From Oopsacas minuta (lineage: Eukaryota; Animalia; Porifera), in assembly GCA_024704765.1 (NCBI GenBank), contig JAKMXF010000354.1, positions 915,690 to 979,689 on the forward strand: a stretch of DNA of 64,000 nucleotides. Direction: 5' to 3'. Of the stretch, positions 31,922 through 39,695 are shown piece after piece; position 1 is the stretch's first letter, and each line of letters begins with the position of its first letter. The position numbers were made by a program, and so were the translations under genes. The notes under the pieces were generated by a model, which was not told where the DNA came from, did no database searches, and was given only the letters and a program-made list of their open reading frames with translations.

Positions 31922-34900
31922 TCATTGAAAAGTAATCACAAATCTTGGAAGATCGTGAGCTGGATCTTTCATTACGATTATACCCCCATTCTGTGTGTGG
32001 TGCTGCCCAGGAGTACCAAGTAATAGTTCGTTAACCATCATCTTCTTCCCACCTAAAACATTCTTTAAGGTTTACTGCAGGTATTCTATTAGTAAAATTG
32101 AATATACAAGTTACGTCAAGAAAGTTAATTAATACCTCTACAGTAAGAAAGTGAAATATCTGGAGTGGTAGCGAAATACTCTCCAGGCCCGTGAGCCTGC
32201 CCTTTTCTCAGAGACGCATTGTAACCATTCTGACAAATACTGTCAATATTAGCTTCAGGAGTTCCATGAAACGCCAGAGCTGTATTTCTGTTATCTTTCG
32301 CGAGGCTCTTATACTTCTCTTTGAATAACTTGAAAAGTGCACCACCTGGATGGGCATGTGGATTCTCCTTAATATCAGTTACTATTATGTTAGGAAAGGT
32401 TTTTAGCCATTTTTCAACTTCTTTCCTGTCTGTGAGGATGGCAGCTATAAACGAAAATTGCTCATTAAAATAGGACGAAATCTAAGTATAGTTATTTGAC
32501 AATTGTTTAATAATTGAATTAAATGAACAAATATTTTCTGCAAACCAATTTAACAAATTTCAGTCACAAGATCCATCACCCCAGCCGTCTCTCCATCTCT
32601 CCCATACTTTATCACAGGGAAAACTAGGCTTGCCTAGTCTAGTGTTAACTTCATTGTGAGCTCTACACAGCCATAAACTCAGTGTTAGAGAAGATGTGCT
32701 GACAGGAGGATGAGTACTCATCCAATCTCTGAAATATTCTGCACACTCTTCACAAGGAAACACATAGGAAAATGTGTGTAGAAATGATAGCATATCTTCC
32801 TGCTGTTGCTGGGAAGGTTCATCAGGGTAGTATGCTGCCATCGTGTGAAGGAAATTCCAAGTGGATTGTCCGAGCTCTATCCTGTCAACTGGACACTCCT
32901 TGGGCCACCCCTTCGAACTCTTTTGTCCTCCCTGGGGATTGATAACAGTACTCACTCCCCCGAAACCTCCTGTAGAAAGCTTCTGACTCCAAGTATTGAA
33001 ATCAGTACAAGCTCTACAAGGCTTCTTCTTATTCGAAGCTCTATCCTTCTCCGCTTCAACATCGTAAGCTAGGACACTCCCTGACATATTCAGGAACATT
33101 CCTCCAGCTGTGCCGAGCACTCTCAAGGCACGAGACAGCTGACTCATAACACTTATAAGCAGCTAACATTATACATAATTATTGGTAGCAATTATTAAGC
33201 AATAGATGTGGCTAGTGAGAAGCCATATATGGTCTGTAAGCACAAAAGAATTTTGATTATATTTTATCAGTTCACTCATTAGGCAATTTGTTATACACAA
33301 TTCTGATAATTATTAGTTATCGCATATTTGACGTAATAATTGTATGATTAGAAGAGATGACATAGAGAAGTTGGCCTTTGTATATTTACAAATTTGTACA
33401 ATTAGTCAGGTCGTAGGTAGATTTACAGATGGCATAACTATCTCGGGCCTCAGTCAAAATACAAAATGTTCGAAATTGGGGTAAACAGCTGTTTTGCTGG
33501 AGAACTGAAATTAGCATGCATTTGATATAACCGATACCAACAGTATAACAATTATATTCTACTCAGACAAATGCCTCGATTGTACTCATCAGCAGATACT
33601 AATCCGCTTATGTACTCGTCATCAATCATCATAGTAGACTCTCCTAATACAGAACTGACTGTACATAACACGGTCTGATTCCTGGTTAGTATGGTTGAAT
33701 TAAAATATTACAACTTGGTTTTCAGTATATTTCTGCATTTTGAAAAGTGTCTAATATTATGTCAAGATTGTAAGCAATTAATGTTTGGTTAATCAGCTGT
33801 CCGGCTCAACACGTGTTACTGTCTATTCAACATTTTTACTAACCATGTGAACAACCGCTAGTTCATTTGATAGTTCAATAAGGTATTATTGTCACTTTGA
33901 AGTTTTGCCAATAAAGTAATCAAAGGAATAATTATCTACCAATTCAGCTTCTTATAATACTAATAATCTACCCGACACATCTAATAGTAATTTCTATTTC
34001 AACAGGTGCTAAAATATATGAATATTTAATTAACTCACCATCTCGTCTGGGTGTATCTTGCTCAGCATGACTCTTACTACAGTAATCTTGCTGAGTCCCT
34101 GAATTCTCTACCAGTTTAGGCATGTTACAACCTGGTAGATCGCACTGAGCATTCGGGTCAATAACAACTAGAAATTAAAATAAATAACACGTAATGTGAT
34201 TATTTATATGTATATAGATTTCCTCACGTTTAGAACCCATTGCTTCAGCCTTTTTCCTATGAGACTTGGAGCAGAAATGATGAGTAACTCCATCCTCGAT
34301 AGACTTTGGTTTCCAACAGCCAGGGATGGCGCAGCGATCATCTGGCTTAACAACATTCTCTAGAAATATTTGTTAAATATGCATATGTGTAAAGTTATGT
34401 ATTCATCAAATTACCTGGACTTATCCCTTGGGTATTTCCTTGAGCTGAGTGAGACCTGGAGCAGTAGGGGTGCTCCTTACCTTCATCAAAGAATCTGTTG
34501 GGATTAAATTTAATTAATAATTGCTAAGATTGAGAATAACAATAGGGGAATTAAAATATTTGTTTTTTAGGAGTGGGGTTCCTTTTATCCTTTTAGTTAT
34601 CAAATTGACACCCTTCAATTATCAAATTCAACTTAAATACTCCCGAATAAAGGGGGGGAATAAAATTACACCCATGTAAGCGGGAGGGAACCCTTTCGAA
34701 CCCTAAGGCCTTGGCTAAGAGTGGAAACAAAAAGGGTGTAATGTTTACCGATAAATTTATCAAAAACAGGATAACAAACATAGAAACTAAGAAAATTATT
34801 CGAAATACAAATAACAAACTAAAATGTTAGGTAAAATTCTAAGATGAGAATTGTTAACTGAACTCTAAGATTCATTTCCTGGCTTGATATGAAATAGCGT

Positions 34901-37900
34901 CCCTCTGTTTCATCCATGTGACAAAATGTTCTAACATTCTTCTAAAACCCTTTCCTATATTCGCTTTCTTGTACTCTTTAATCTTCTTAACAATTGTGCT
35001 TAGACACAAATGTAATTGTCCAGACCTTATACATTGTTTATAGAATACCCAACCCATTAGAAATAGGTCAATTGCCAGTTTTGGATAGTTGCCAGTTATT
35101 ACGTCATTACACAGCTTATATATACTGGTGGAAATAGCGTATCCTACTTTACAGAGACTAGCAAAATCTTCACTTATATTCACCCCGCTGGAGAAGTTGT
35201 AATCTCTTACACATATTTTTCCGTTAGCAAACTTAATACACGTGTTAACAACTTCTTGAGCTGGTTTAGAAATGTTAGATGGGTACTTGATACAACTTAT
35301 ACTAGACCCTTGAGTGAAGGTGTCAAATGGTTGAATGGAGATGGGATTATTACAGTTCCATGAGTAAAAGGCTATCGCATTGTAAATCATTACCCCACAG
35401 TCTAATATAACATCTCCAAGGTATATCCCGTGTTCTTCCAAATAACCATCAGCTGTGAATAAGGACTGAATTCTTTTGAAAATATGGTCTCCAGGGAGGA
35501 GTCCATGTGGACAACAAGATCTACATAATAGGATTTACTCATGTCTTAGCCATATACTTGTGTGTCGTTCCAGTGAATCTATAACTCACACACATTGGAT
35601 AAAGTATGGTGATATGAATAAACCCATTCTAGCTGTGTAGAAATAATACTGGGACATAGGATTCTATACTGGGACATAGGATTCTATACTGGGACATAGG
35701 ATTCTATACTGGGACATAGGATTCTATACTGGGACATAGGATTCTATACTGGGACATAGGATTCTATACTGGGACATAGGATTCTATGCTGGGACATAGG
35801 ATTCTATGCTGGGATTAAATGGCCCTGATAGGATTGTTTTGTGATTACATATATTTTCAACCTAAGTAATTGAATCTGCTTGCTACGCCCTTGTTAATTA
35901 AAATACTCATAAGTTTTTATTATACTGTATAGATGGCATTAGTACATGGAGAGGATGATGAGAGTGATACAGAGGATACCACTAAGATTCCTCCGCTAAA
36001 GACTCAAGATAAGAAGGAGGGTGTGAAAGGGAAGTTAGTAGACGGGGAGGAGTCTGAGACAGATGATGAGGACACATACCATGACCCGGAGATTACGCAT
36101 ACTGAAGCGGACATTAGAGTAAAAGGTAATAATCATACAATGGCATGCTATCTCCACAAACGGGGCCTGTGGAAATGGGGAACTCTGGAAACGGATTGAA
36201 AATAAATAGAGCAATTTCCTAGTCCTAGACAAATGAACCTCCACAAATGGGGAAATGGGGTAGCATTTTTGGGCGTTCCTGACACCCCGTTAGTGGAGGC
36301 TATACTGGTTGAATGAAATCTAATATAGGCACTAACACTTTCGCAAGCTCATCAGAGCGAGTAGGAGAGATAGGTAAAAAGAACTTAGCAGGAGATCTAG
36401 CAAAACTATCAGAAACTCCTCAGCAAAAGAAACTAGGGGATGCTAACAGGAAATTGAGAAAGGATATAACAACTTCAGTTCTGTCAACTTACCAGAGAGC
36501 ACTACACAAAGCGGATCAGGTAGGGGACCAGATCGGGAAGTCTCAGCAGATAACAGGGAAGTGTATGGACGAGTTGAAACATACTTCTATCTATCTGGAC
36601 AGATTATCTGATATACTCGCAACAGGACTGAATGACCTCCCTCAAATAAGGGCGATAAGTACAGATACATAATAATTATTAGTAGCTTATCATTGCACCA
36701 GGAATATATTGTAAACTGAGTAGACTCAGGATTATAATTATAAATCATTACAGTGATATAGTTATAGTGTTGTTAATCCACATACATCATGTATACGATA
36801 TAGTGATATTCGTTCGCTAAACCTTTCTCCTACCTCATCGCTATATCGAATATCTATTGTGTGTATATAATCTTACGTATTATAAATATGGCATATATGT
36901 AGCGTGTTAGTAAATGGCAGATTTGACAGAAGATACCAGTTACTGCTCTACACACTGCTCTAAGTGCTTCACATCACATTGCAATGACAACATTTGTCCA
37001 TTAGTTATGTGTGTTTGTATGCAAAGAACGCATGAATGCAAACTGACAGAACACAAGAAACATATTTGTAGGGAAACAGAGGTCAGTTGTCTATTGAGTG
37101 AGATTGGTTGCCCGCTTCAAATGAAGAGGAAAGATGTATTAGAACACTTATCAGTTTGTCCTGCTAACACTATAGTGTGTAATATGCGACGAGTACGTAA
37201 CTATAATGTAAAGAACCTTCTTGTTAAACACTTGAATCCAAGAGAATCCGATCAGATACACTTCTCCTGTTACATACACGATATAGCTCTTATGCGAAGA
37301 ATGAAGAGATCTGCTAAACGGATCGATCAAGAACTCAGGACGAATCCTCACTGCAGAGAGATTGAGGCTATGGTCGAGAGTGTAGAAGGCTGTGATTGCC
37401 AGAGTTATCAGTATAGATGCCCTATGTATGACGTACAAACCGGGGATTCAGAGACTGTAATTTCATGTGGACACATTGTTAGACGCGAAGAAGTAATGGA
37501 ACATAGATTATCTCATCTATGTCTCACTGAGCAATTGAATAGTGTGTCTTGCCCAATGCAGGGTTACGGATGTACATACAAACCTCAAGCAATTGAGTTA
37601 TTAGCAGAGAGAAATTTGTGTAGTTTTAATGTAGCTGTGTGTAGCTTAGTAATAGATTGGAATCATGTGACGTCATATGAAGTTGATTATGACGCAATAA
37701 GCTATCTACCACCCAACGTTATGGATAACATACTGGATAGGCTAGATAGCTTGTCTATGAGGAATTTAAGTTGTACTAGCAAACGAATGAGAGAATTGTG
37801 TTACGAGAAATTGTACAGGAAAGGTATCGTTACTTTTGAATGGAAATCTGATGGCAAAGGGAAATGGCTTATGGGAAGAATGATTTGGTCATTTTCTAAA

Positions 37901-39695
37901 GCAAGCAAGTTCCCATCCTATCGTACAAACGCGAAATCCACCAGTGACTTGTCTAACCATTTAGATAATTGTAAATATTACGCAAAAGAGAGGACTAACT
38001 ACGATAACCTTCCAGATAAATTGAAGATGAGTTGTATGTTTCTTGCTGATAATAAAGTATAAGTTAACTCGTAGACTCTGTGTTGATATACTTTTGAATT
38101 ATTTTAGATATATTTATTGTATACATTTTGGGAATATCAAAATTAATACGAACCTTGGTTTATTACATCCAGGTAGAGCACATACCCCTTCTGACACCTC
38201 TCTCTGTGAGGGAGTACCCGCGTTTGGGTCAGGAGCTATTGGGGGATAAAATCAAATTGTTTTGAAATATATTCATAAAATCACTCACGAATTAATCCTA
38301 TTTGTTTGCCAGCATCAGCATGAGTTCTCCCGCAGTAGTTCATAAACGGCCATACATGTTTGTTACAGCTAGGCAGTAGACAATGGGTTATACCCTTTAC
38401 TATAGTATCTATAAGGAATATTACAGATTAAAATAATATCATGTATGTATGTAGTATTTGTTATTTGTATTTACTAACTGCCGAGAGCTTTCCTTCTCTC
38501 ATGCTCCATAGCATGAGTGATAGAGCAACAAGTCTGTAATCCATTCACAGGGTCGTAGAAGGGAGGCTGGTCACACTCTTGGATAGCACACTTCATAGGA
38601 TTTGATCCTTGCATCGCCTGTATAGGAAATATTTGTTATTATTATATTACATACATAAGACTAGTTTACCTGTTGAGGTTGTGGAGCTATTAATTGCTGA
38701 TTCATGTTTGGATTAAACATCAAGTTATTCCCCTGATACATCTGATTAGTCTGGTGCATTGGATAAAACTGCGCTCCTCCCATTTGATTCATTGGTACCT
38801 GTCCCATTTGACCCATTGGTGCTTGTCCAAATTGGTTAATAGGTGCTTGTCCCATTTGACCCATTGGTGCTTGTCCAAATTGGTTAATAGGTGCTTGTCC
38901 CATTTGACCCATTGGTACTTGTCCCATTTGACCCATTGGTGCTTGTCCCGTTTGACTCATTGGTACTTGTCCCATTTGACCCATTGGTGCTTGTCCCATT
39001 TGACCCATTGGCACTTGTCCCATTTGACCCATTGGTGCTTGTCCCGTTTGACTCATTGGTACTTGTCCCATTTGACCCATTGGTACTTGTCCCATTTGAC
39101 CTATTGGTGCTTGTCCCATTTGACCCATTGGTACTTGTCCCATTTGACCCATTGGTGCCTGTCCCATTTGACCCATTGGTACTTGTCCCATTTGACCCAT
39201 TGGTGCCTGTCCCATTTGATCCATTGGTACCTGTCCAAATTGGTTAATTGGTACTTGTCCCATTGGGTTCCTGGATACAGTTGAATCAATTAGCTCAGTA
39301 GCTGAGGTTTGATTAAATGGAGTAGCTCCCATATTTTGGTACTGAATACCCCCTATCCCAGCCTGAAGGGAGCTCTTAACATCTTCTTGTTGTCCTACGG
39401 TACTGATTGTTTCAGGTGGAGGTGATAGCACAACACGATTATACTGTGGAGGACAGTGAAGATTTATTGAACATTCACAATATTCACAGAAAGCAAATTC
39501 CCCATAACTTGCTTCAAACGATTTACATTCAATACAACCTCTGCAGGCACCAACAACTCCAAATGACTCATGCTTTATTGGGGCGTGATTGCATTCTGAA
39601 CAACGTACTGAGGTCCCGTCTGGGTTTGCCTTGAATTCAATACAAGCACAACCGTCCATACACTTCCCACGGAAGGTACCGAATTTATCCTTCAT
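31922..39695 (-). CDS. Zinc-finger/repeat-containing PARP-family ADP-ribosyltransferase (~712 aa); exons 39695-38670, 38617-38479, 38399-38289, 38235-38154, 34494-34415, 34359-34228, 34167-34039, 32444-32136, 32052-31922
   Basis: All eight junctions are GT-AG and phase-compatible (2139 nt). Finger 3 is split across the 3.66-kb intron ([10 protein letters not shown]|[15 protein letters not shown]). Catalytic motifs [48 protein letters not shown]. Confidence 0.8.
32560..33147 (-). CDS. GFER: FAD-linked sulfhydryl oxidase ALR/Erv1, nested same-strand in PARP intron 32445-34038
   Basis: CRAC shuttle motif, [18 protein letters not shown], active-site [26 protein letters not shown]. Confidence 0.95.
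34872..35627 (-). CDS. LRAT/NC-domain (permuted NlpC/P60) protein lacking catalytic residues; exons 35627-35590 and 35520-34872 (~228 aa), nested same-strand in PARP intron
   Basis: 69-bp GTGAGT..TAG intron gives [67 protein letters not shown], matching PGDHI / HxGIYxGD / NCExFAxxCKxG. Confidence 0.7.
35646..35814. repeat. 20-bp minisatellite (ATACTGGGACATAGGATTCT), about 8.5 copies
   Basis: Seven exact units, one with an A>G change and a partial ninth; no spacers. Confidence 0.97.
35933..36672 (+). CDS. BLOC1S3: BLOC-1 subunit 3; exons 35933-36125 and 36329-36672, nested in PARP intron
   Basis: Acidic [18 protein letters not shown] motifs; C-terminal [29 protein letters not shown] helix like the BLOC1S3 domain; phase-1 intron. 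Confidence 0.7.
36147..36307. mobile_element. MITE family D in BLOC1S3 intron
   Basis: Right TIR CCCCGTTAGTGGAGGCTATACTG, degenerate left copy; interior matches the reverse complement of 43966-44044. Confidence 0.65.
36914..38062 (+). CDS. FBXO30/FBXO40-like F-box protein with TRAF-type zinc finger, nested in PARP intron
   Basis: [34 protein letters not shown]; [16 protein letters not shown]; F-box [35 protein letters not shown]. Confidence 0.85.
   Translation: MADLTEDTSYCSTHCSKCFTSHCNDNICPLVMCVCMQRTHECKLTEHKKHICRETEVSCLLSEIGCPLQMKRKDVLEHLSVCPANTIVCNMRRVRNYNVKNLLVKHLNPRESDQIHFSCYIHDIALMRRMKRSAKRIDQELRTNPHCREIEAMVESVEGCDCQSYQYRCPMYDVQTGDSETVISCGHIVRREEVMEHRLSHLCLTEQLNSVSCPMQGYGCTYKPQAIELLAERNLCSFNVAVCSLVIDWNHVTSYEVDYDAISYLPPNVMDNILDRLDSLSMRNLSCTSKRMRELCYEKLYRKGIVTFEWKSDGKGKWLMGRMIWSFSKASKFPSYRTNAKSTSDLSNHLDNCKYYAKERTNYDNLPDKLKMSCMFLADNKV
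38772..39251 (-). repeat. Coding 24-bp tandem repeat, 20 units (P-[MI]-x-Q-x-G-[QG]-[VA]), in PARP exon 1
   Basis: [32 protein letters not shown] units counted from the translation; 480 bp. Confidence 0.95.

Follow-up and report, generated by a model that had tools for sequence, protein, structure and literature searches.

A nine-exon gene of the glass sponge Oopsacas minuta encodes putative zinc modules, octapeptide repeats and a compact PARP-family domain

Inspection of a 64-kb stretch of the genome of the glass sponge Oopsacas minuta (assembly GCA_024704765.1, contig JAKMXF010000354.1, positions 915,690 to 979,689; hereafter, the window) revealed a gene at 39695..31922, on the minus strand, whose nine coding exons join into a single open frame of 715 codons plus a stop codon. 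The product is an intracellular protein of 715 amino acids (aa) that contains, in this order, two N-terminal Cys/His modules, 20 octapeptides, five fingers and a C-terminal ADP-ribosyltransferase (ART) domain of the PARP type, 146 aa long. The nine exons are one spliced gene, as indicated by RNA-like contigs that span its junctions, by the syntenic conservation of the exons and by the continuous open reading frames (ORFs) of the orthologues; it is expressed as one spliced message and is under purifying selection. In the public annotation this gene is cut in two, and the half coding for the enzyme is filed under a nested gene for the sulfhydryl oxidase ALR. The best explanation of the whole, to which we give a probability of about 0.8, is that a single glass-sponge gene combines zinc modules and repeats with a shortened, predicted mono-ADP-ribosyltransferase (mono-ART). 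The PARP fold and the mono-ART class are known; what is new is the union of a shortened PARP-family catalytic domain with this accessory architecture, and a literature search found no description of the compact ART subfamily or of the accessory architecture.

Exon structure and splicing of the gene

The original prediction, made without database searches, had proposed a 'hidden' PARP gene with nine phase-compatible exons over this span. All nine were present, and the eight introns that separate them all have GT donors and AG acceptors on the minus strand. The exons, with positions given in the window, are as follows.

39695-38670, minus strand: exon 1 (E1), coding
38617-38479, minus strand: exon 2 (E2), coding
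38408-38289, minus strand: exon 3 (E3), coding
38235-38154, minus strand: exon 4 (E4), coding
34494-34415, minus strand: exon 5 (E5), coding
34359-34228, minus strand: exon 6 (E6), coding
34167-34039, minus strand: exon 7 (E7), coding
32444-32136, minus strand: exon 8 (E8), coding for the first two thirds of the compact ART domain
32052-31922, minus strand: exon 9 (E9), coding for the last third of the ART domain, and the stop codon

The catalytic exons had been said to be missing from the mechanically made list of ORFs. Exon 8 was indeed absent from it, because its frame contains no start codon.

The stretch was present in four public sequencing runs, all from one sample. Three of these were DNA-like, with flat depth and Nextera adapters, and no run labelled as RNA was found to contain the stretch. 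In run X4, the exons were deeply covered and the introns only shallowly, an intergenic bin had zero depth, and the adapters were of the TruSeq type; on these grounds, and because it contained spliced contigs, the run was taken as RNA-like. X4 contigs showed joints at exactly 32444/34039 (E7/E8), 34167/34228 (E6/E7) and 34494/38154 (E4/E5), all three reading CT..AC on the plus strand, which corresponds to GT..AG on the minus strand. The two long junctions proposed originally, 38154/34494 and 34039/32444, are thus exact in the gene model and present in the contigs. Further, a loose contig end at 38235 continued into the end of exon 3 (E3/E4), and one at 34361 into that of exon 5 (E5/E6).

All nine exons were found by tblastn, in order and with 56–93% identity, in L001, a 717-kb contig from another assembly; a tetraspanin gene, exon 1, an F-box gene, BLOC1S3, ALR, the PARP exon and an annexin gene lie there in the same order. 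When exons 2 to 9 were compared with those of L001, the proportions of nonsynonymous (pN) and synonymous (pS) differences were 0.086 and 0.62, a ratio of nonsynonymous to synonymous substitution (dN/dS) of ∼0.07; for the ART exons 8 and 9, dN/dS was 0.03–0.04. In addition, fingers and ART are encoded in one uninterrupted ORF in four orthologous proteins, P0173 (535 aa), P0176 (458 aa), P0177 (404 aa) and P0174 (396 aa), two of which (P0173 and P0176) also start with an N-terminal module. The four align over every exon junction of the model, including the one that rebuilds finger 3, E7/E8 and E8/E9; their uninterrupted ORFs derive from either mRNA or an intron-less gene. A further orthologue, P0002, contains a counterpart of finger 5 and the ART in one ORF. 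The claim of a single gene is therefore upheld by the X4 junction contigs, by the presence of all exons in the syntenic L001 and by the orthologous ORFs.

Two public O. minuta proteins match the window exactly in their exons. P0181 ('hypothetical protein LOD99_12841', 468 aa) comprises exons 1–4, and then reads past the exon-4 donor into the intron, where it stops in the middle of finger 3. P0180 ('FAD-linked sulfhydryl oxidase ALR-like isoform X1', 339 aa; Pfam domains Evr1_Alr and PARP) is made up of the entire ORF of ALR, the gene nested in intron 7, with a splice from its penultimate codon onto exons 8 and 9, the E8/E9 join being identical to that of our model. Were the public annotation correct, there would be two genes, a finger protein ending in intron 4 and an ALR/Erv1 gene with an isoform that has the ART exons as its last ones. 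The existence of both proteins in the databases and the presence of a usable GT donor in the penultimate ALR codon agree with this. However, P0181 ends mid-finger after ignoring a donor site, the joints 34039/32444 and 38154/34494 are both present in X4 contigs, and none from ALR to exon 8 was among those listed for this run. Moreover, the ALR ORF ends in a stop codon of its own and was called as an independent gene of 198 aa in L001; in the orthologues of other sponges, a single ORF runs from the last finger directly into the ART. Nested genes abound in glass-sponge genomes, and the O. minuta annotation, in which only 83 were detected, in some cases fuses such a gene with its neighbour (Aphrocallistes vastus genome paper, PMC10282587). 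We consider the two-gene arrangement highly improbable, and the gene to have been broken in the annotation because its two long introns carry nested genes and a small nucleolar RNA (snoRNA) candidate. The PARP gene was therefore hidden, as had been predicted, with its ART fused to ALR. This amounts to a gene-model correction in one of the few glass-sponge genomes; the false fusion of a sulfhydryl oxidase with a PARP domain would mislead domain-fusion and orthology analyses.

The compact ART domain

Exon 8 alone reached the Pfam PARP family (PF00644) with 39.4 bits (gathering threshold 26.7; E 6e-10), and the orthologues scored 30–47 bits, although the alignment covered only positions ∼40–120 of the 199 in the model. 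The ART exons contain the motifs FHGT, GEYFA and GGIIV, from which the original prediction had read an H-Y-I triad. The residues concerned are encoded at the following positions.

32266-32268, minus strand: His629, exon 8, His of the triad
32176-32178, minus strand: Tyr659, exon 8, Tyr of the triad (in GEYFA)
32152-32154, minus strand: Ser667, exon 8, NAD+ pocket (+8)
32143-32145, minus strand: Tyr670, exon 8, NAD+ pocket (+11)
31979-31981, minus strand: Ile697, exon 9, third position of the triad

Gly630 lies next to His629, leaving the His-Gly pair of the NAD+ pocket intact. The distances of +8 for the Ser and +11 for the second Tyr, counted from the triad Tyr, are those of PARP1. PARPs with an H-Y-E triad are polymerases, while those with H-Y-I or H-Y-L (PARP7, 10, 11, 12, 14 and 15) are mono-ARTs that lack the Glu needed for elongation.

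A scan of 1.8 billion representative sequences identified 688 relatives of the domain at E≤0.001, and 128 at E≤1e-10. When the 150 best representatives were taken together with the other members of their clusters, 60 sequences matched the whole 146-residue domain from end to end; its short length is therefore a trait of the family rather than a truncation. A profile built from 46 sequences was compared with the Protein Data Bank (PDB), and retrieved ZAP (1e-10), PARP10 (4e-10), PARP12 (1e-9), PARP15 and PARP14 (to 4e-7), followed by the tankyrases and PARP1. The AlphaFold model of the orthologue P0002, which is 59% identical over exon 8, had a predicted confidence (pLDDT) of 96–98 over the domain. 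With this model, the 50 best Foldseek matches were all PARP catalytic domains, with PARP12 first (E 3.9e-9, probability 1.0) and PARP15, 13, 14 and 10 following in that order. The neighbours of the domain in the ESM Atlas were likewise all PARP clusters.

In an alignment of 47 sequences that included that of O. minuta, the His, the Gly, the Tyr of GEYFA and the Tyr at +11 were invariant (47/47), and a Ser occupied the +8 position in 41. The third triad column contained I in 33 sequences, V in five, T in three, L and M in two each, and Y and F in one each; E, D and Q did not occur. The triad His and the first Tyr were placed by significant hidden Markov model (HMM) matches, in which the motifs align with those of PARP15, PARP14 and PARP10. 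For the third position, the placement was derived from an alignment of the penultimate strand ('nivVv') with 'SVFVIF' of ZAP. The Pfam match, the profile, Foldseek and the 47-sequence alignment all bear out a compact PARP-family ART with an H-Y-I triad. Going by sequence and modelled structure, the domain is one of PARP fold with conserved NAD+-pocket residues and an Ile in place of the catalytic Glu. Binding of NAD+ and mono-ADP-ribosyltransferase activity are predicted from the H-Y-I triad and from what is known of the family, and we regard them as reasonably probable.

The alignment also revealed a signature invariant in the subfamily, R-x2-Q-x2-G-x-G-E-Y-F. Its Arg, Gln and Glu, at residues 126, 129 and 135 of P0002, were present in 47/47 sequences, the Glu directly preceding the triad Tyr. 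In canonical PARPs the residue before that Tyr is hydrophobic.

The sponge domain resembles the clade-3 PARPs (PARP12, PARP15, PARP14, PARP10 and the inactive PARP13/ZAP) in its catalytic fold (Foldseek E 4e-9 to 1e-7), in the His-Gly and G-x-Y-F-A motifs, in the Y-x7-S-x2-Y spacing and in having a hydrophobic residue instead of the catalytic Glu. It differs from them in length (∼146 aa versus ∼190) and in the distance between the Tyr and the Ile position (∼38 residues versus ∼68), as well as in its own invariant R-x2-Q signature. The region that is absent corresponds to the acceptor loop and one strand, and the choice of acceptor or substrate, or the activity, may therefore differ in the shortened ART. 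A Pfam scan detected no WWE, macro, C3H1 or RRM domain in the sponge protein, and no exon matched the zf-CCCH or WWE families of the PARP7/12/13 type at E≤1. In PARP7/12/13, the C3H1 fingers have the spacing C-x7-8-C-x4-5-C-x3-H, and precede the ART together with a WWE domain.

Zinc fingers, N-terminal modules and repeat tract

The five fingers have the pattern C-x4-C-x10-15-C-x3-H. Five such fingers had been predicted, and this count was correct, but the spacer of 10–14 residues assigned to them is really 10–15. Four fingers lie within single exons, while finger 3 is split by the 3.7-kb intron 4; it is rebuilt by the E4/E5 splice and is contiguous in P0173. In a six-frame scan of the window, the pattern was found only in exons of this gene.

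38513-38590, minus strand: finger 1, residues 352-377, C-x4-C-x15-C-x3-H, with a positional orthologue in L001, L002, L004, L007, L008 and P0059
38320-38382, minus strand: finger 2, residues 398-418, C-x4-C-x10-C-x3-H, 'WPFMNYC' type, near-identical in all orthologues
38154-38182, minus strand: finger 3, first half (10 residues), at the end of exon 4
34449-34494, minus strand: finger 3, second half (15 residues), at the start of exon 5
34259-34333, minus strand: finger 4, residues 492-516, C-x4-C-x14-C-x3-H
34067-34144, minus strand: finger 5, residues 535-560, C-x4-C-x15-C-x3-H

When the five fingers were aligned with 15 orthologous ones, only the four ligands were invariant; the consensus was C-A-L-P-G-C-x2-P ... 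[YF]-C-[SG]-x2-H-A. None of these 20 fingers reached any Pfam family. Below threshold, the matches were to zf-FCS (at best 17.2 bits, E 0.0046, for finger 4; gathering threshold 22.4), EsV_1_7_cys and RPAP2_Rtr1, and three of the 20 matched MYM/FCS (PF06467) at E≤1. A language-model search with the finger array gave no usable match. PDB matches of the finger profile to HIV-1 protease entries ('LPGCWKPKLI') were discarded as chance hits to a string of 10–15 residues in synthetic constructs.

The AlphaFold model of finger 4 (pLDDT 87) shows a loop that contains short strands and leads into a helix. Two independent structural searches placed the same chain first: 9ci7_B, the C-terminal domain of Tox4. 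With Foldseek against all PDB chains the match had a probability of 0.97, an E value of 0.23 and a TM score of 0.72; with VIA against PDB representatives, Z was 3.5 and the root-mean-square deviation (rmsd) 2.7 over 37/37 residues (range 568–604). The identity was 22%. Within this gapless range, C5, C10, C25 and H29 of the finger fall on C572, C577, C592 and C596 of Tox4. In 9ci7, chain B is the Tox4 C-terminal domain bound to PNUTS; its zinc is held by Cys572, Cys577, Cys592 and Cys596, and residues 597–612 form the PNUTS-binding helix (PMC12278311). The finger may thus be called Tox4-CTD-like in modelled shape and in spacing, although homology is not claimed. Both have the ligand spacing C-x4-C-x14-C-x3-X directly before a helix, in a single zinc loop that is putative in the finger; the sponge protein differs in its last ligand, a His, and in carrying an array (5–7 fingers, versus the single one of Tox4), and a link to PNUTS or PP1 is not known. 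The lower VIA matches (Z 2.1–2.8) included A20 fingers, RPAP2, MYND, zf-HIT and the FCS finger of L3MBTL2. With MYM/FCS, A20, Rtr1/RPAP2, MYND and the EsV-1-7 repeat, the sponge fingers share the '[FY]-C-S' before the last ligand and the knuckle-hairpin-helix arrangement, with Pfam E values, below threshold, of 0.005–0.03. Unlike MYM/FCS (C-x2-C ... F-C-S-x2-C), however, they have C-x4-C as the first knuckle and a His as the last ligand, and they reach no gathering score.

The N-terminal part of exon 1 codes for the two Cys/His modules, and its later part for the repeats.

39570-39662, minus strand: Cys/His module 1, residues 12-42, C-x3-C-x-C-x2-F ... C-x2-C-x-H-x4-H
39453-39545, minus strand: Cys/His module 2, residues 51-81, a divergent copy, C-x2-C-x2-C-x2-F ... 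C-x2-C-x-C-x4-H-C
38778-39264, minus strand: 20 octapeptides Q-[VA]-P-M-G-Q-M-G, low complexity (period 24 nt, 20.3 copies, 85% matches in Tandem Repeats Finder)

The motif C-x-C-x2-[FYW] ... C-x2-C-x-H-x4-H was also found at the N-terminus of P0173 and P0176 and, in 4–5 copies, in the protein P0059 (described below), with the second module of which module 2 aligns. Pfam matches of the modules were sub-threshold only (FAM221 and VCIP135_N), a language-model search yielded only leads below 0.9 (archaeal hypothetical proteins, and PCAF_N at 0.75), and the first 90 residues of the protein matched no PDB sequence in a search. The zinc modules are therefore as unfamiliar as had been supposed, neither the fingers nor the N-terminal modules reaching a curated Pfam family. 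The 20 octapeptides had also been predicted, and Tandem Repeats Finder recovers them (24 nt x 20.3). The tract was present only in O. minuta and L001; the orthologues P0173, P0176 and P0177 lack it. Matches of the tract to Pfam bL9m_N and Mtr2 lay below the cut-off and were set aside as low-complexity noise.

Distribution, proposed function and nested genes

The ordered architecture, i.e. N-terminal module, 'CAIxEC...CC' finger, 'WPFMNYC' finger, further fingers and compact ART, was seen in six contigs (L001, L002, L003, L004, L007 and L008), and the finger part of the protein is present in the demosponge Geodia barretti. Judged by such comparisons of sequence, both glass sponges and demosponges have retained the gene, and its enzyme subfamily extends to protists. 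Outside sponges, the full architecture may occur on one contig, L003 (from run SRR33270664, 65% GC). The suggestion that the domain combination might be lineage-specific thus did not hold: the architecture recurs in a second glass-sponge-like contig, in demosponge-type sequences and in the 65%-GC contig, and the ART subfamily in protists. P0179 of Halichondria panicea (389 aa, 'E3 ubiquitin-protein ligase NEDD4-like isoform X2') contains WW repeats, half a finger and the compact ART; its start in mid-finger suggests that it is perhaps another annotation chimera, like the ALR-ART protein of O. minuta.

A maximum-likelihood tree was built from 58 ART domains of the compact family only, P0059 being left out as its match did not cover the whole domain. 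A branch with 100/100 support separated the sponge-type sequences from the others, which include an MMETSP transcript with FHA and macro-domain fusions. The protist compact ARTs (MMETSP/FHA, macro fusions and P0019) match end to end with 35–50% identity and have the same invariant residues. They differ from the sponge proteins in their partners, which are macro, FHA, RanBP2-type or C-x2-C FCS-like fingers (the last in P0019 of Entosiphon sulcatum) and not the combination of N-terminal module and C-x4-C array. A compact PARP subfamily is thus widespread in sponges and marine protists, and in sponges is tied to two zinc modules without a curated family.

Region 954-7280 of L003 contains the gene for P0059, an orthologue of 759 aa with 4–5 N-terminal modules, seven fingers and the ART, and no introns. 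A word search with the whole protein returned only P0059 itself, low-complexity words swamping the result, and one with its ART region alone returned only P0173. The neighbour of P0059, in head-to-head orientation, is another gene with a PARP domain and one such finger, and beyond it come genes for a NADAR protein and a protein kinase; L003 954-7280 is possibly an ADP-ribosylation gene cluster, to judge from its gene content. On L007 (3161-15088), another sponge-like contig, the finger-ART gene is tandemly duplicated, each copy being paired with a divergently oriented, shorter paralogue that has two fingers and the ART, which gives four PARP matches in 12 kb. On L004 (66-1334, minus strand), a 422-aa ORF, a paralogue, lies head to head with P0173, at a distance of 115 bp; it contains two N-terminal modules and one C-x4-C finger but no ART, so that the zinc modules also occur without the enzyme.

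For the protein as a whole, we propose that the enzyme would bind NAD+ and transfer single ADP-ribose units. The fingers and the N-terminal modules, which probably bind zinc, would probably be docking or targeting modules, in the manner of the protein-binding zinc loop and helix of Tox4, and the repeat tract (20 octapeptides rich in Q, M, G and P) would be a flexible low-complexity spacer. That the fingers dock proteins rather than bind nucleic acids is proposed by analogy with Tox4, and tentatively, at somewhat less than even odds. A role as a stress or innate-immunity effector, put forward in the original prediction, would be speculative.

The ART might instead be a catalytically dead pseudo-enzyme, like PARP13/ZAP or PARP9, that serves only for binding or as a scaffold. 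The catalytic Glu is absent, the domain is shortened in the acceptor-loop region, and the best PDB match of the sequence profile is the inactive domain of ZAP. ZAP, however, has lost the triad His, while in the compact family all five NAD+-pocket residues (H, G, Y, S and Y) are (nearly) invariant over 47 diverse members; further, exons 8 and 9 are under strong selection (dN/dS 0.03–0.04), and the fusion of protist members to macro domains, which are ADP-ribose readers or erasers, fits an active writer. A dead enzyme therefore appears unlikely. An active enzyme aimed at nucleic acids, with a finger array that binds RNA or DNA as FCS-type fingers or the CCCH fingers of PARP12/ZAP do, seems to us no likelier. 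In vitro, some clade-3 PARPs modify the ends of RNA and DNA, and, as mentioned above, the fingers matched zf-FCS below threshold and weakly resembled the FCS finger of L3MBTL2 in structure (Z 2.1). The L003 orthologue, moreover, adjoins a gene of the NADAR family, which strips ADP-ribose from nucleic-acid bases (PMC12945103). This neighbour, however, was seen on a single contig only; the best structural match of the finger, the Tox4 C-terminal domain, is a protein–protein interface, and Pfam detected no canonical C3H1, PBZ or other nucleic-acid-binding domain.

Some observations weigh against the preferred reading of one gene that encodes a compact, predicted mono-ART. X4 is not on record as an RNA run; the shorter side of its junction contigs is only 27–28 letters long, because k=31 unitigs end in this way where spliced and unspliced paths meet; and junctions E1/E2, E2/E3 and E8/E9 lie outside the stretch compared with the reads. 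The structure model is that of P0002, a 59%-identical orthologue, and not of the O. minuta protein. The ZAP HMM segment that places the third triad position is not significant by itself, the placement depending also on the position in the modelled strand, and ∼25–45 residues between the Tyr and Ile strands are absent by comparison with PARP10 and PARP1 (∼30 with respect to PARP10). Finally, the match to Tox4 is statistically weak (E 0.23, Z 3.5) because the finger has only 37 residues, and its last ligand is a His rather than a Cys.

A more far-reaching idea, which we consider a long shot, is that the sponge-type proteins would form an old, undescribed class of ADP-ribosylation 'writers', in which the R-x2-Q ... 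G-E-Y-F signature of the shortened domain, with its Glu beside the triad Tyr, would confer a catalytic or acceptor specificity unlike that of any characterised PARP and the Tox4-like finger array would dock a partner, e.g. a TND-type domain of the transcription-termination machinery. The compact domain provides the ADP-ribosylation field with a minimal natural ART, and the fingers are a first candidate relative for the Tox4 fold.

The long introns of the gene contain the following features.

32560-33147, minus strand (host strand): intron-less Erv1/ALR sulfhydryl oxidase gene (Pfam), nested in intron 7
35933-36672 and 36914-38062, plus strand: two-exon BLOC1S3 gene and F-box/TRAF-like zinc-finger gene, respectively (Pfam), nested in the long intron 4
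33558-33638, minus strand: box C/D snoRNA candidate, 81 nt, in the part of intron 7 that separates exon 7 from the ALR gene

The ALR, BLOC1S3 and F-box genes are nested likewise in L001, and X4 depth over the nested genes was higher than over the surrounding intron. Intron 4 also contains an ORF of 189 aa on the host strand (34872-35441, minus strand). It was considered as an extra exon or gene, and rejected as a part of the PARP gene: it had no Pfam match, and L001 lacks the entire segment. Either this is an insertion specific to the species, or the ORF is no gene at all.

The snoRNA candidate has a terminal stem (TCTACT/AGTAGA), a box C (ATGATGA), an internal TGATGA and a terminal CTGA. In Rfam, it matched SNOR75 over the full length of the model with 38.8 bits, below the gathering threshold of 50 (E 1.4e-6), and SNORD15 more weakly. 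The candidate is ∼80% conserved with L001 (8492-8638), while its flanks are not conserved.

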